Sequence record: OQ992562.1
DNA length: 64,000 bases
Strand: one strand, 5' to 3'
Below, piece by piece: positions 9,994 to 26,784 of the stretch (the first letter of the stretch is position 1; every line of letters begins with the position of its first letter). Made by a program: the position numbers and the translations under genes. Under the pieces are notes generated by a model, which saw only the letters and a program-made list of their open reading frames with translations, had not been told where the DNA came from and made no database searches.

Positions 9994-10824
9994 ATGGATA
10001 TTATCGAGAGAGATGTAGGTGCTAATATTCCAATTAGCATTGGAACTTCTTTTGCTCTCGAAGGGCTTATAGGAACACATCCACAAAAGCCTAGACAACC
10101 AACTGATGTTAAGTCTATTAAAGAAATATGGATTAATGTCCGTACTCTTGCAAGAAATATGTGGCAGGCTATGAAGTCTGAACAACAAACTAATATTAAC
10201 TTGGTTGCAGCAGTCGATGTTTTATTTCAAGAAGCACAAACAATCCCGGTTGCTTTACGGCAATCGGGGATAAAAGCAACTGTAAAATATTACATTACTG
10301 GTCGAGATGCAGTGAAGTGGTTATTCCCTAAAGCTACATTTAAAGTATCACGAACACCGCAACAATTAGCTTATGATGTTTATGAACGATTTGTATCAAT
10401 TGAACTATATCAGAAGTTAAAAGATACAGATTTAATTACAATGGAAATATCTAATAAACCTCCAAAGGTTGAAGGTACTGTTTTACTATTAACCCATTTC
10501 CCACATGAATTATTATGGAAACCCCATTTTAATAGACTTCTTTTATTGGAATCCCATACGGGCAAAATAAAGACATACAACATGTGGTATACTAAACTAA
10601 ATGGTTTAAAAGAAGATACTCCATTTCCTTTTACATCATTTGCTATACAGATATTTGGCGATAAACAATTACTTGAACCACAAGACAAAGCTATTCGTGC
10701 ACAGTTAAAACAATTGGCACAATCTAGAAAATGGACAGGATTAACAACACCAGATAAAGTTCATCATGACATTACTGCTTATGGTTCTAAAGAGTTAAAA
10801 GAAGCATACAAGAAATTCAAATAG
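9994..10824 (+). CDS. Conserved chimallivirus protein (gp66 position)
   Basis: 276-aa ORF; position between the SbcD-like gene and ChmC. Confidence 0.75.
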   Translation: MDIIERDVGANIPISIGTSFALEGLIGTHPQKPRQPTDVKSIKEIWINVRTLARNMWQAMKSEQQTNINLVAAVDVLFQEAQTIPVALRQSGIKATVKYYITGRDAVKWLFPKATFKVSRTPQQLAYDVYERFVSIELYQKLKDTDLITMEISNKPPKVEGTVLLLTHFPHELLWKPHFNRLLLLESHTGKIKTYNMWYTKLNGLKEDTPFPFTSFAIQIFGDKQLLEPQDKAIRAQLKQLAQSRKWTGLTTPDKVHHDITAYGSKELKEAYKKFK

Positions 10825-10911
10825 AAGAAATACTTGTTGCGATAATATTACGTAGAAATCATTTCCCATCTAGTTAAAAAGAATCTAGTTTTAATTTGGA
10901 GTTATCACATC

Positions 10912-11652
10912 ATGTCACAACAGCAGTCTAATGCACCCGTAGTTAACCCTTTTAATGTAATGAATACTTGGCTACATGCCAAACCATGTGAGGGTTCTCA
11001 AAAACGACCGACGCTGCGTTTTGGTCTGTTTAAAAACCAACCACGGGTTACTGTTCGTACTAATGTACCTGGTGATAAAGACCATGGTAAAATTGAGTTC
11101 AATACTGACCTAGCAACCTTTGCATGTTTCATTAAGTTTGCAATGGACTTAATTGAAGGTAAAACTGAAGATACTGAACGTGTCTTTGTTTACCGCAATA
11201 ACTTCGTAGCTGGTAAGAAGCGTGATAATTTTATTGAGCTTTCTAAGCTACATGTTGGCCGTGCACAAGATGGTCGAATTTACATCGCAGTGCTAAGCAC
11301 TCAACCTGATCGTCCAAAGATCAAATTCTTCTTTGGCCCATCCCAATTCCATGATATCCGCAAAGCAGATGGTAGTCAACTATCACCTAAGGAAATGTCC
11401 GATGCTTATGCATACGGTTTCCTAGACCCCGCATATAAACTAGTAATGCATCTTCTAGTAACTGAATTCGATCCAGATGCTAAAGGTGTATCTAACCCTG
11501 CTAATTTCAATCAGGGTAATGGTAATAGCGGCGGTTACAATAACGGTGGTCAGCGCAATAACTATAACAACGGCGGCAATAATAGTTATGCTAAGCCGGC
11601 TAATAATAGTTATAATGACTCAGCTTTTGATGAGGATATGCCTTCCTTCTAA
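10912..11652 (+). CDS. chmC: ChmC-like nucleus-associated RNA-binding protein (Whirly-like fold with N/G-rich tail; gp67 position, also reported as Imp6)
   Basis: 246 aa, beta-rich core then GNGNSGGYNNGGQRNNYNNGGNN tail and acidic DEDMPSF end; immediately upstream of the sigma-like and PicA genes. Confidence 0.65.
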   Translation: MSQQQSNAPVVNPFNVMNTWLHAKPCEGSQKRPTLRFGLFKNQPRVTVRTNVPGDKDHGKIEFNTDLATFACFIKFAMDLIEGKTEDTERVFVYRNNFVAGKKRDNFIELSKLHVGRAQDGRIYIAVLSTQPDRPKIKFFFGPSQFHDIRKADGSQLSPKEMSDAYAYGFLDPAYKLVMHLLVTEFDPDAKGVSNPANFNQGNGNSGGYNNGGQRNNYNNGGNNSYAKPANNSYNDSAFDEDMPSF

Positions 11653-24021: not shown

Positions 24022-24165
24022 ATGCAAGTACGAATTGAGGTAATCAATAGTGAGGGCAATCTGGATATCGAAGAACGGGTTGATATCCGCCCAATGAAGG
24101 GGTTAACGGCCTGGATGGTCGCTCTAGCTATCAAAGGTCTTGTAGCTAGCTTTGCACGTAAGTAA
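24022..24165 (+). CDS. 47-aa hypothetical protein missed by the track (MQVRIEVINSEGNLDIEERVDIRPMKGLTAWMVALAIKGLVASFARK)
   Basis: RBS TAAGGAG at 24009-24015; ends just before the terminator at 24171. Confidence 0.65.
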   Translation: MQVRIEVINSEGNLDIEERVDIRPMKGLTAWMVALAIKGLVASFARK

Positions 24166-24170
24166 GGCGA

Positions 24171-24215
24171 CATAAACCCCTCTCCATGTGGAGAGGGGCC
24201 TGTCTTTATTTTTTT
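24171..24215. terminator. Bidirectional terminator
   Basis: CCCCTCTCCA-TG-TGGAGAGGGG with T-run; lies between convergent genes. Confidence 0.8.
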
Positions 24216-24713
24216 TTATTTAGTTAACGGCTTGTTTAATTCATTTAACTGGTTATTGTTATTAACAGCTTCATTATGGGTAATATTTCTACATAATTCA
24301 ATTATGTATTCTACCTCAGAATAAGCTAATTCAAAGAATTCAGTTAATGACATATTAGATAAGCTACCTACTTTATACTTGAAGAAATCTCTAGTCAGTC
24401 TCCTTCTCAACCCACCTTCGATAAAGTCCTCTTTAGGATTTACCTTATTTAACCACATGGGTCCGTTTTCTGGTGAACCGATATCGTAATCAAGTAGATA
24501 TGCTTCTCTTGTTAAACGTGCTGCTGTAGACGGTCTTACTGCCCCTACTGTCGATAATAGTCTATCTAAGTGTGTATCATCTTCATTTAACTTATCATAA
24601 CCAAAGTTTGGATGTAGGATGTGACCACTATCTTCCTTGAAAGTGGCCTCAAGACGACTATATCTCAGATCATTAACTACACCATCCGGTTTGACTTCGA
24701 GGCCGCCAAAGTA
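24216..24713 (-). CDS. -1 frame extension of the gp77-like gene (putative tail assembly chaperone, P2 E+E'/lambda G-T type)
   Basis: Frame is open from 24731 to stop 24216 with no ATG/GTG/TTG until 24458; entered by a -1 slip at T TTT TTT (24719-24713); C-terminal MSLTEFFEL resembles P2 GpE-family MSLTEL (by eye). Confidence 0.65.
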   Translation of the reverse strand, partial: YFGGLEVKPDGVVNDLRYSRLEATFKEDSGHILHPNFGYDKLNEDDTHLDRLLSTVGAVRPSTAARLTREAYLLDYDIGSPENGPMWLNKVNPKEDFIEGGLRRRLTRDFFKYKVGSLSNMSLTEFFELAYSEVEYIIELCRNITHNEAVNNNNQLNELNKPLTK

Positions 24714-26278
24714 AAAAAAGTTGACAGCATGTCAATAGGGATTAGGTGTGGGAAACGTTCTTTAAATTTAGTAGCGGCAGGTGACTCACATACTGGACAA
24801 TTCCAACTTGTAATTGCAATCATTCCAATTAGTTGTGAATCAATGAAGTTACTCACCGCATTAATAAAGCGGTCATTATATTCCGGTGTGGATAGAATAT
24901 TAGTTAAGAACTTTTCAATAGTTTCACGATTAGTGGTTGCAGTACGAATATTGTCTTCAGAACTTTCACCATCGTCATCTTCACGTACTTTAATTTCTTT
25001 AACAAAATGTGAGAACTGACGGGCAATAGAGATCTTTTGTAAACGTGCAATATACTGAGAACGTTGCGGACCATCGACTGGTTCATTAAAACTACCTTGA
25101 GTCATATCGATAATTGAGTTAATCCAACTATCACCAGACTCTCGGCGATCAGCAATTGTACACATCTCAAGAACAACACCAACGTCACCAAACATTTCAG
25201 TTACTTGAGTATCAATACGGAATCCTTCTTTATAAGTCTTAAGATCAGATTCAGTGCATGCATTAAACTTACGTGCAATATATTTCTTTTGTTCTTCTGA
25301 GAATGCCAGTAGATCATATTGAACAAGCGTTGACATATTAAGTTTCGCTGTTTCAATATGGTTACATGTATTGGCATCTGCAATACATGGATAACTATAA
25401 TTAAATCCATCTGGGTACATAGTCGCTGCTAGTGCATGATGTAAGAATGGTTCATCAGCTACTGAGATAACATGCTCTAGGTCAGTTGGAGTGTTGAACT
25501 TATAGTTGGATTGAATAACACATGCAAGTGCTAAACTACTAACCATGTTAAGTAACACAGCTGCCATGTTTGAGAACAGCATACCTTTTGATTCAGCGCC
25601 TAGCCGGATCTTTAATTGTGCTAGACGTGCTTGTAGGGCAGCTACTTCAGTACCAGTAGGTGCACGTAGTTTTACCCAAATACCTGAATGAGGTAGGAAA
25701 GTATCATATGGCGTACCGATGTTAGCTTTACGTGTTAGGAAAACTAGAGTTTCATCATCGGTCATTTTACGACCATTGGTATTAAATACAGGTCGGCCAG
25801 GTCGAATGATCTTTTCACCATAAGGAATTTCACTAGACCATTCAGAACCTTCTCGGGCAGTTGCACCGATTGGTGCATCTTCAACAATAGAGTGAGCTAA
25901 GCCTTCCAGAATAGCAGCTGTCCACTTTACACCGTCACTAGTGTCATCTACTTTATTATCAGCAAATGCTTTAAATAGTTCTTTATTGTGATCCAGGAAA
26001 TTATAAACAGTCTGGGGATTCTCACGTAGTAAAGTAAGAATGCTAGCACTGTCTTTAATAGCCGGTTCAGAAGCATCCCGAATATTTCCAGTTTTAGCAT
26101 TACGTGGAATACGTAGTTTAATTTCTTTTTGATCAGGAACGAAAGGTGGAGTTTCCACCTCGTCATTATTTTCAATACTAGAGTCAGGATCGTGTTGCGC
26201 ATTGATCTCATCAATTTGATCTAGTAGATTCTCTTCTGGAGTATCATCGTACTCATTATCGAAGTCAGCAGTAGCCAT
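24677..26278 (-). CDS. Putative tail/baseplate assembly chaperone (phiKZ gp77 position), CPxC motif near the C-terminus
   Basis: 533 aa; acidic N-terminus; YPC..C and CPVC Cys pairs; slippery heptamer 11 codons before the stop. Confidence 0.6.
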   Translation of the reverse strand: MATADFDNEYDDTPEENLLDQIDEINAQHDPDSSIENNDEVETPPFVPDQKEIKLRIPRNAKTGNIRDASEPAIKDSASILTLLRENPQTVYNFLDHNKELFKAFADNKVDDTSDGVKWTAAILEGLAHSIVEDAPIGATAREGSEWSSEIPYGEKIIRPGRPVFNTNGRKMTDDETLVFLTRKANIGTPYDTFLPHSGIWVKLRAPTGTEVAALQARLAQLKIRLGAESKGMLFSNMAAVLLNMVSSLALACVIQSNYKFNTPTDLEHVISVADEPFLHHALAATMYPDGFNYSYPCIADANTCNHIETAKLNMSTLVQYDLLAFSEEQKKYIARKFNACTESDLKTYKEGFRIDTQVTEMFGDVGVVLEMCTIADRRESGDSWINSIIDMTQGSFNEPVDGPQRSQYIARLQKISIARQFSHFVKEIKVREDDDGESSEDNIRTATTNRETIEKFLTNILSTPEYNDRFINAVSNFIDSQLIGMIAITSWNCPVCESPAATKFKERFPHLIPIDMLSTFFTLAASKSNRMV

Positions 26279-26289
26279 TTAAAACTCCA

Positions 26290-26784
26290 TTATTGTTGAA
26301 TTAGTTTTTCGTCCCAACCAGCTTCTCGAAGAGTGCTGATCATCGCTAGGATTACACCATCAATACCGCGTTCAATAGCACCTTCAATACCAGTATATTT
26401 AGTAACAAGCTCACCGATGAGTTTTAGCTCATCTTCATTATTTGCCGGACCAACCTTACCTTGATGTTGTGCATATAGGACACTGATAATTTTAGTTAGT
26501 CGATTAAGGTCAGCAATAACTGTTTGTAGGTTCTTTTGGAATCCAGTAGGATCAGATAACGTCGGAATAATTTCATTGATCTTATTAATAACTGGATTAA
26601 TGAATACTTCAGTTTGTAGAATACGCTTACCTACAGAACCTGCTAGTACATTGACAACATCCCAACCATCGCGGTTAAGAATATGATCAGCTGCGGCAGC
26701 TGATGCTCCAACTGCACGTTCAAATAGACGTAGCGTCTTTTCCTGTTCTTTAGTTAGAGTTGGTTCTTTAGCTTTATTTGACAT
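26290..26784 (-). CDS. Hypothetical helical protein (gp78 position)
   Basis: 164-aa ORF, same operon as the gp77-like gene. Confidence 0.75.
   Translation of the reverse strand: MSNKAKEPTLTKEQEKTLRLFERAVGASAAAADHILNRDGWDVVNVLAGSVGKRILQTEVFINPVINKINEIIPTLSDPTGFQKNLQTVIADLNRLTKIISVLYAQHQGKVGPANNEDELKLIGELVTKYTGIEGAIERGIDGVILAMISTLREAGWDEKLIQQ

Follow-up and report, generated by a model that had tools for sequence, protein, structure and literature searches.

Two isoforms in a fixed ratio are obtained by a programmed -1 shift on a homopolymeric heptamer in E. coli dnaX (tau/gamma) and in gene 10 of phage T7 (10A/10B). The tail assembly chaperone genes of phages lambda (G/GT) and P2 (E/E+E') are built in a comparable way: on a slippery run that lies a few codons ahead of the end of the first open reading frame (ORF) a -1 shift takes place, so that a rare long form accompanies the abundant short one, with the N-terminal part in common, and the arrangement is conserved despite sequence divergence. 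Conservation of this frameshift in long-tailed phages is said to have been recognized by Xu, Hendrix and Duda in 2004. The present analysis concerns a gene with the same layout in Pseudomonas phage PhiPizzaParty (OQ992562.1), a phiKZ-like phage of the genus Phikzvirus, namely the homologue of phiKZ gp77 (PHIKZ077). It lies on the minus strand of a window of 64,000 nucleotides, by which we mean the whole stretch of DNA that was analysed and to which all positions refer. An earlier note, made from the letters of this window alone, had proposed that a programmed -1 ribosomal frameshift yields a product of ~687 amino acids beside the one of 533 amino acids, and family-wide conservation together with the published detection of the C-terminus encoded in the -1 frame now strongly supports that proposal. 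That this one gene gives both proteins from a single mRNA, through programmed -1 ribosomal frameshifting, is, in our estimate, correct with a probability of about 0.8.

The likeness to the described systems is one of layout. The gp77 gene resembles lambda G/GT and P2 E/E+E' in each of the respects listed above, and the long form resembles T7 10B in being a minor, C-terminally extended version of the main product. It differs from the lambda and P2 chaperones in size, as its products have 533 and ~687 amino acids compared with roughly 90-280, about four times larger, and in position, as its neighbours are the gp78 gene, a head protein gene and genes for RNA polymerase subunits and a helicase, and not tube or tape-measure genes, a remoteness that the earlier note had already pointed out. 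From dnaX it differs in that the dnaX shift shortens the protein and relies on strong stimulators, namely a Shine-Dalgarno-like element upstream and a 3' hairpin, neither of which was found at the gp77 site. The protein families of dnaX and of T7 gene 10 are unrelated to gp77. The earlier note had also equated the gene with the lambda and P2 chaperones; no sequence or profile link to them was found, and searches of Pfam, PHROGs, NCBIfam and PDB by sequence, and by fold, returned no tail assembly chaperone family for either part, which also leaves a likeness of the C-terminal motif to the P2 chaperone, seen by eye, without a counterpart in the Pfam, PHROGs, PDB sequence and fold searches.

Anatomy and conservation of the proposed slip site

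The elements that make up the site are as follows.

24677..26278 (minus strand): 0-frame ORF encoding the short product, 533 amino acids, homologue of phiKZ gp77 (PHIKZ077), cg18, phrog_4585
24719-24713 (minus strand): slippery heptamer T TTT TTT, codons ACT TTT TTT ACT, phase X XXY YYZ, where the -1 shift is proposed to occur
24677..24712 (minus strand): overlap zone read in both frames, comprising the last 11 sense codons and the stop of the short product and the first -1 codons
24216..24713 (minus strand): -1 frame extension, 165 codons and a stop, counted from the re-read base 24713
24216..24458 (minus strand): the sole ATG-started sub-ORF of the -1 frame, 80 amino acids, corresponding to PHIKZ076.4

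Each element is where the earlier note had placed it: the run of seven T at 24719-24713 is in phase within the 533-amino-acid gene and precedes the 0-frame TGA (24679-24677) by 11 sense codons, and the -1 frame is open from 24731 down to its stop at 24216, a stretch that corresponds to 71442-71957 in phiKZ, continuing for 165 codons past the slip. Its first ATG is codon 85 (24458), TTG occurs only later and GTG not at all. Runs of seven T or seven A are depleted in the window (14, compared with 35 +/- 9 expected from shuffles), and the one at 24719-24713 is the only run of seven T that lies within a long ORF. According to the mechanism proposed here, most ribosomes would stay in the 0 frame as far as the stop at 24677 and release the 533-amino-acid protein, while a few would slip back by one base as tRNA-Phe decodes the in-phase U UUU UUU and would then translate another 165 codons in the -1 frame, as far as 24216. 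The resulting form of ~687 amino acids would share its first 522 residues with the short product and continue with a linker and a helical C-terminal domain.

The gene is an orthologue of phiKZ gp77, being 99-100% identical to phiKZ-like gp77 sequences and matching phrog_4585 at an E value of 1.7e-195. Megablast matched positions 24100-26400 to PhiPizzaParty at 100% identity and with identical coordinates, and to 46 other phiKZ-like genomes at 95-99.3% identity, both pieces are full-length in 47 of 47 phiKZ-like records, and in all 12 of those records for which both coordinates are listed the start of the -1 piece lies 1565 nucleotides from that of the upstream piece, as it does in the window. 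Beyond the genus, tblastn matches to the 533-amino-acid part were found in 227 phage records, with hosts from more than 10 genera, and matches to the -1 piece in 68 Pseudomonas phage records.

The junction was read in 17 GenBank phages with hosts in Pseudomonas, Xanthomonas, Ralstonia, Klebsiella, Erwinia, Salmonella and Vibrio, namely PizzaParty, PhiPA3, 201phi2-1, Phabio, Psa21, HHBS36_1, Noxifer, Viktualia, RVTF4, D6 and HPP-Temi, as well as Xanthomonas phage Xoo-sp14, Ralstonia phage RSL2, Klebsiella phage FBKp24, Erwinia phage Ea35-70, the SPN3US-species phage SaP7 and Vibrio phage pir03; to these were added phiKZ, Goslar and SPN3US (annotated gp39 and gp40). In every one of these named phages the 0 frame has an in-phase Phe-Phe encoded as TTT TT[TC], followed by the 0-frame stop 8-37 codons on. 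With the exception of RVTF4, the -1 frame then stays open from the run through the whole of the small downstream gene of the annotation, which is itself in frame -1 relative to the upstream gene. The distance from slip to stop is 154-176 codons in 16 of the 17 GenBank phages. In RVTF4 the -1 piece is open for 58 codons only, and the ORF annotated after it does not share its frame; this record carries one extra frame disruption, be it real or an assembly error. Among the phages examined are phiKZ, PhiPA3, 201phi2-1, SPN3US and Goslar, the five in which the earlier note had advised looking, and the site and the open -1 frame are present in all five.

A scan of IMG/VR with the family alignment yielded 71 loci, one on a contig that ends before the site. 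TTT TT[TC] stands at the Phe-Phe in 66 of the 71, with a -1 frame that is open for 149-180 codons (one exception, at a contig end). In four loci the run, likewise in phase, is slightly shifted in register (GTT TTT or GTT TTT TTG), and the -1 frame is open for 166-186 codons. The arrangement is thus kept in 70 of 70 assessable IMG/VR loci and in all named phages examined, and is unchanged in relatives with just 20-40% protein identity; at the IMG/VR sites the +1 frame is mostly open for less than 20 codons. The 72 distinct sequence contexts all have U_UUY in phase, and the run reaches eight T in several lineages. In a full search with a hidden Markov model the family profile retrieved 1,684 clusters at E <= 1e-3, and the 150 best representatives all end at most about 26 residues from the profile end, with no in-frame fusion among them. 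That the arrangement has been kept, with the parts neither fused nor separated, suggests that both forms, and the ratio between them, matter.

Codon choice, expression and rival explanations

Codon choice shows that the run itself is under selection. Of the two Phe codons, the first is TTT at all 69 of the 69 sites, and the second is TTT at 49 of them, compared with 20.6 expected, whereas TTT makes up 29% of the Phe codons elsewhere in the same genes and, in several GC-rich genes, 0 of 12-21. As TTT is used at the site against the usage of each gene, selection acts on the nucleotides and not just on the amino acids.

The distal part of the -1 frame is translated in infected cells. In the Grad-seq (gradient profiling) study of phiKZ-infected PAO1, which includes mass spectrometry (MS) on pooled samples from 10-30 min (Supplementary Table 1, PMC10914614), the log10 iBAQ (intensity-based absolute quantification) values are 10.7 for PHIKZ077 and 9.08 for PHIKZ076.4, so that the distal -1 ORF (the last 80 codons) amounts to ~2.4% of gp77. 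In the 10-40% glycerol gradient of that study the maximum for PHIKZ076.4 falls in fractions 4-6, along with the phage RNA polymerases, a position in which a free 9-kDa protein would not be expected. The maximum for gp77 falls in fractions 3-6, and 39% of gp77 is in the pellet (PMC10914614). RNA sequencing at 0-10 min gave equally low levels for both ORFs (3-7 units, compared with hundreds for early genes; PMC10914614), and they are therefore co-expressed and not early. In the same data set the abundance of gp77 at 10-30 min after infection equals that of the RNA polymerase subunits (PMC10914614).

Signals that might assist the shift were sought on both sides of the run. The earlier note had described the following stem.

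24645..24704 (minus strand): candidate stem of 8 base pairs with a 44-nucleotide loop, beginning 8 nucleotides 3' of the heptamer and included in the predicted minimum-energy fold

Its arms, GGCCTCGA (24704-24697) and TTGAGGCC (24652-24645), lie where the note had put them and pair in the predicted fold. The stem is not, however, of unusual stability or conserved: the 79 nucleotides past the run fold at -20.9 kcal/mol, with a z-score of -0.66 compared with dinucleotide shuffles, the mean fold z-score of the 72 distinct contexts is -0.56, RNAalifold found no consensus pair among 29 Pseudomonas-clade sequences, and relatives retain 1-6 of the 8 pairs at the aligned columns. These shuffle scores, the RNAalifold result and the pair counts lend no support to a pseudoknot or other stimulatory fold, as had also been suggested, and rule out a conserved 3' hairpin or pseudoknot; the 8-base-pair stem is probably not a required stimulator. 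On the 5' side, a Shine-Dalgarno-like motif precedes the run in 4 of the 72 contexts, rarer than the background of 16%. A subclade of seven loci around Psa21 has a stable long-range stem of its own from 4 nucleotides past the run (z -2 to -3.8) that the other clades do not have, and this may be a lineage-specific stimulator. The U-run by itself seems to be the frameshift signal; it would act alone, with neither a conserved 3' structure nor an upstream Shine-Dalgarno-like element, and a run that has no stimulators would fit a low efficiency of a few per cent. The ~2.4% estimated for gp77 is within the range reported for lambda.

Several observations weigh against a shift on the ribosome. The heptamer is perfect (X XXY YYZ) in only 48 of the 72 contexts; the base before the run is T in 46 and A or G in 23, so that about one third of the lineages have an imperfect heptamer, and in a few the run has only five T. 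Neither a stimulatory RNA structure nor a Shine-Dalgarno-like element is conserved in the contexts examined. The region detected by MS is confined to the part that ATG 24458 could also start; the detection fits a low-efficiency shift and falls short of proof because the detected part lies after that ATG. Start codons occur close to the 0-frame stop in 201phi2-1 (TTG) and Psa21 (ATG), and coupled re-initiation could add to expression in such relatives. Finally, an extra U in the transcript would lead to the very same protein. With regard to the imperfect heptamers, an A or G before the run still lets the P-site tRNA-Phe re-pair fully on U_UUY, and tandem and single-tRNA slippage are therefore both possible. 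The anatomy of the site, its conservation, the selection on the nucleotides of the U-run and the translation of the distal -1 ORF in infected cells are established; a shift on the ribosome, the ratio of the two forms, estimated from the published abundances, and their role are inferred.

The rival that survives best, although we consider it unlikely, is transcriptional slippage, whereby the phage RNA polymerase would add one extra U on the T-run and a minority of mRNAs would have the two pieces in frame. A homopolymer run as the sole conserved signal, unaccompanied by a conserved structure or a Shine-Dalgarno-like stimulator and reaching eight T in several lineages, is what such a process might leave behind, and the middle and late genes of phiKZ-like phages are copied by an unusual polymerase that the phage itself encodes and that may or may not be accurate on runs. 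Yet several lineages have only five T (A or G TTT TTC), a short run compared with those on which bacterial polymerases are known to slip, and the phase that allows tRNA-Phe to re-pair is kept in 72 of 72 contexts. A ribosome depends on this phase and a polymerase does not, although a conserved Phe-Phe could also fix it. It is on account of the short runs in some lineages and the invariable phase that transcriptional slippage is rated below slippage of the ribosome.

Less likely still is that the two pieces are separate genes, the downstream one being translated from a start of its own (ATG 24458, a non-canonical codon, or re-initiation) and the T-run merely encoding Phe-Phe. Every public annotation splits the pieces or leaves the region empty, and such an arrangement is also favoured by the start codons that 201phi2-1 and Psa21 have at or close to the stop of the upstream gene, and by the MS-detected part lying past the ATG. 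Against it stands the fact that these starts are not conserved: the first ATG of the -1 frame lies 18-157 codons past the run (median 51), the annotated starts of the downstream gene vary in place among the relatives and comprise ATG, TTG and CTG, and conserved -1-frame motifs lie upstream of them. The Pseudomonas clade shares a series of -1-frame motifs from just after the run to beyond the 0-frame stop, and the -1 pieces from all clades align as one family. When a profile of the -1 pieces was used as query, the downstream proteins annotated in phages of Ralstonia, Burkholderia and Vibrio were recovered at E values of 1e-27 to 1e-9; none is as long as the slip-to-stop distance, and they were therefore truncated by start-calling. 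Separate genes would, moreover, account neither for the 85 codons of the window that pass before any ATG, GTG or TTG, nor for a frame relation that is -1 in every locus, with the -1 frame always reaching back over the T-run, nor for the use of TTT against the codon usage of the gene, nor for the position of a lone 9-kDa product in the gradient. As to a homopolymer sequencing error, to which such runs are prone in some chemistries, or a recent inactivating frameshift in a single 687-amino-acid ORF, both are ruled out by the same arrangement in 47 phiKZ-like genomes sequenced independently in many laboratories and in relatives at 20-40% protein identity, and by the lack of a fused version among the 150 diverse representatives.

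The two protein parts and their possible role

If ribosomes do indeed slip at this site, one would like to know what the two forms are for. Searches of Pfam, NCBIfam and PDB sequences were uninformative for both parts, and in PHROGs they fall into phrog_4585 and phrog_12109, both of function unknown. Neither part matches any solved PDB chain by sequence, in a set that does include phiKZ virion chains, since gp120 was returned. The 533-amino-acid part has near-invariant cysteines (Cys298/305/494/497), whose spacing in two distant pairs suggests a putative structural zinc site, and an invariant Phe521-Phe522. Its AlphaFold2 model, made with 20 homologues, is a confident one, with a pLDDT (predicted local distance difference test) of 78 and a pTM (predicted template modelling score) of 0.80, with residues 1-41 disordered. 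Foldseek found no fold match for this model in PDB (best E 3.4). In BFVD, orthologues came first (E 1e-26 to 1e-16), followed by entries named 'Baseplate hub assembly protein, bacteriophage T4-like', 'Baseplate hub assembly chaperone' and 'putative baseplate hub subunit', with a probability of ~1, E values of 2e-4 to 5e-2 and target template modelling scores of 0.52-0.56, a weak likeness.

The best named fold matches of gp77 outside its own family are thus to the T4 gp26/gp51 family (PF12322, T4_baseplate), of which gp51 is annotated as a chaperone. For comparison the T4 sequence was retrieved by the accession shown in PMC10175313. T4 gp26 and gp51 score 216 and 178 bits with PF12322, compared with zero matches among 30 chimallivirus family members scanned. 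Alignment with hhalign of a 169-sequence chimallivirus profile with 44 T4-type sequences gave a local match only, over ~50 columns around a CPxC motif, at a probability of 39-56% and E values of 1e-4 to 3e-4, compared with 0.075 for a reversed control. Membership of gp77 in the T4_baseplate family is unproven, and two independent methods point there. Unlike the T4 proteins, gp77 is twice as long. T4 gene 26 (10803-11429 of the retrieved sequence) gives the nested products 26 and 26' by internal initiation and not by frameshifting, so that the gp26/gp51 family also makes two products, by a different route. Chimallivirus hubs resemble the T4 hub (Goslar preprint).

For the -1 piece the prediction has low confidence over the first ~95 residues and then, at residues 98-165, shows a helical domain with good confidence. 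The piece has homologues in phrog_12109 and in the small downstream gene that relatives have in their annotations, and in BFVD it matched orthologues only, including Goslar gp082. A T4_baseplate domain split across the frameshift was considered and rejected, as the -1 piece has no similarity to the T4 family. A 96-amino-acid protein filed as 'Klebsiella pneumoniae, partial', on a contig of 288 nucleotides, is 89% identical to the -1 piece; the entry is probably phiKZ-like phage DNA in a bacterial assembly.

The GenBank record of 201phi2-1 has a virion-MS note on gp138 and no such note on gp136 or gp135, the main text of the PCH45 transposon sequencing (Tn-seq) study makes no mention of cg18, and the pelleting of gp77 in the gradient hints at very large or membrane-bound assemblies. 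The likeliest role would be that of an abundant factor that serves assembly, possibly that of the baseplate hub, and is not part of the virion; its rare long form would have an additional domain for binding or interaction, as in the two-isoform chaperones of other phages. We put this forward tentatively, at somewhat less than even odds, and gp77 may instead have another intracellular role. The identity with a tail chaperone proposed in the earlier note is a lead only, unproven, and it is the weak fold likeness to T4 gp26/gp51 that keeps a role in tail or baseplate assembly alive. A more specific proposal, and a doubtful one, is that the locus is the chimallivirus version of the near-universal tail assembly chaperone frameshift in a distant, enlarged relative of T4 gp26/gp51, or alternatively that the long form has a role specific to the life cycle of the phage nucleus.

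Neighbourhood, annotation and wider meaning

Two further features border the gene.

26290..26784 (minus strand): upstream co-oriented gene, homologue of phiKZ gp78, 164 amino acids, phrog_14050, function unknown
24177..24198 (no strand assigned): G+C-rich hairpin, T-tracts on both strands, immediately past the -1 ORF stop and between convergent genes

The gp78 homologue sits upstream of the frameshift gene in every relative examined. The hairpin is likely the transcript end of the gp78-gp77 unit and a bidirectional terminator; as it stands 3' of the -1 ORF and not of the 0-frame stop, the mRNA would span the whole -1 ORF.

In the public annotations examined the gene always ends at 533 amino acids, and the region past its stop is left empty, or is given to the 80-amino-acid ATG ORF (PHIKZ076.4) or to tiny ORFs on the opposite strand. 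The GenBank record of the window has two such 'hypothetical proteins', at 24232-24324 and 24379-24489, both on the plus strand and opposite the -1-frame coding region; they are probably spurious calls that fill an apparent gap. A description of this frameshift site was not found in the open-access literature searched, and an earlier report elsewhere is possible.

The locus is of wider interest because the chimalliviruses, including phiKZ, PhiPA3, 201phi2-1, Goslar, SPN3US and RAY, are intensively studied and are therapeutic candidates. Among their core genes phiKZ gp077 is cg18, which corresponds to Goslar gp081 and RAY gp267 and is listed only as a 'hypothetical protein' (supplement, PMC10299810); two isoforms are apparently encoded by it. 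The locus would accordingly be mis-annotated in more than 200 genome records, as two genes or as one gene followed by an empty gap or by spurious opposite-strand ORFs, and the core gene set would be corrected in that the small downstream gene becomes a domain of cg18 and not a separate gene. The model predicts a protein of ~77 kDa, which can be sought in existing data. The site would also be a clean example from nature of a frameshift on a U-run that does not depend on structure and that has persisted even where genomes are GC-rich and TTT is otherwise avoided.

A fixed ratio of short to long form, if it has indeed been kept over such deep divergence, would point to a factor that is sensitive to stoichiometry, a hallmark of phage assembly chaperones. 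Should the reading as a relative of the T4 hub chaperones prove true, T4-type hub chaperones would share the two-isoform logic of lambda G/GT, and the nucleus-forming jumbo phages would gain their missing tail or hub assembly chaperone.

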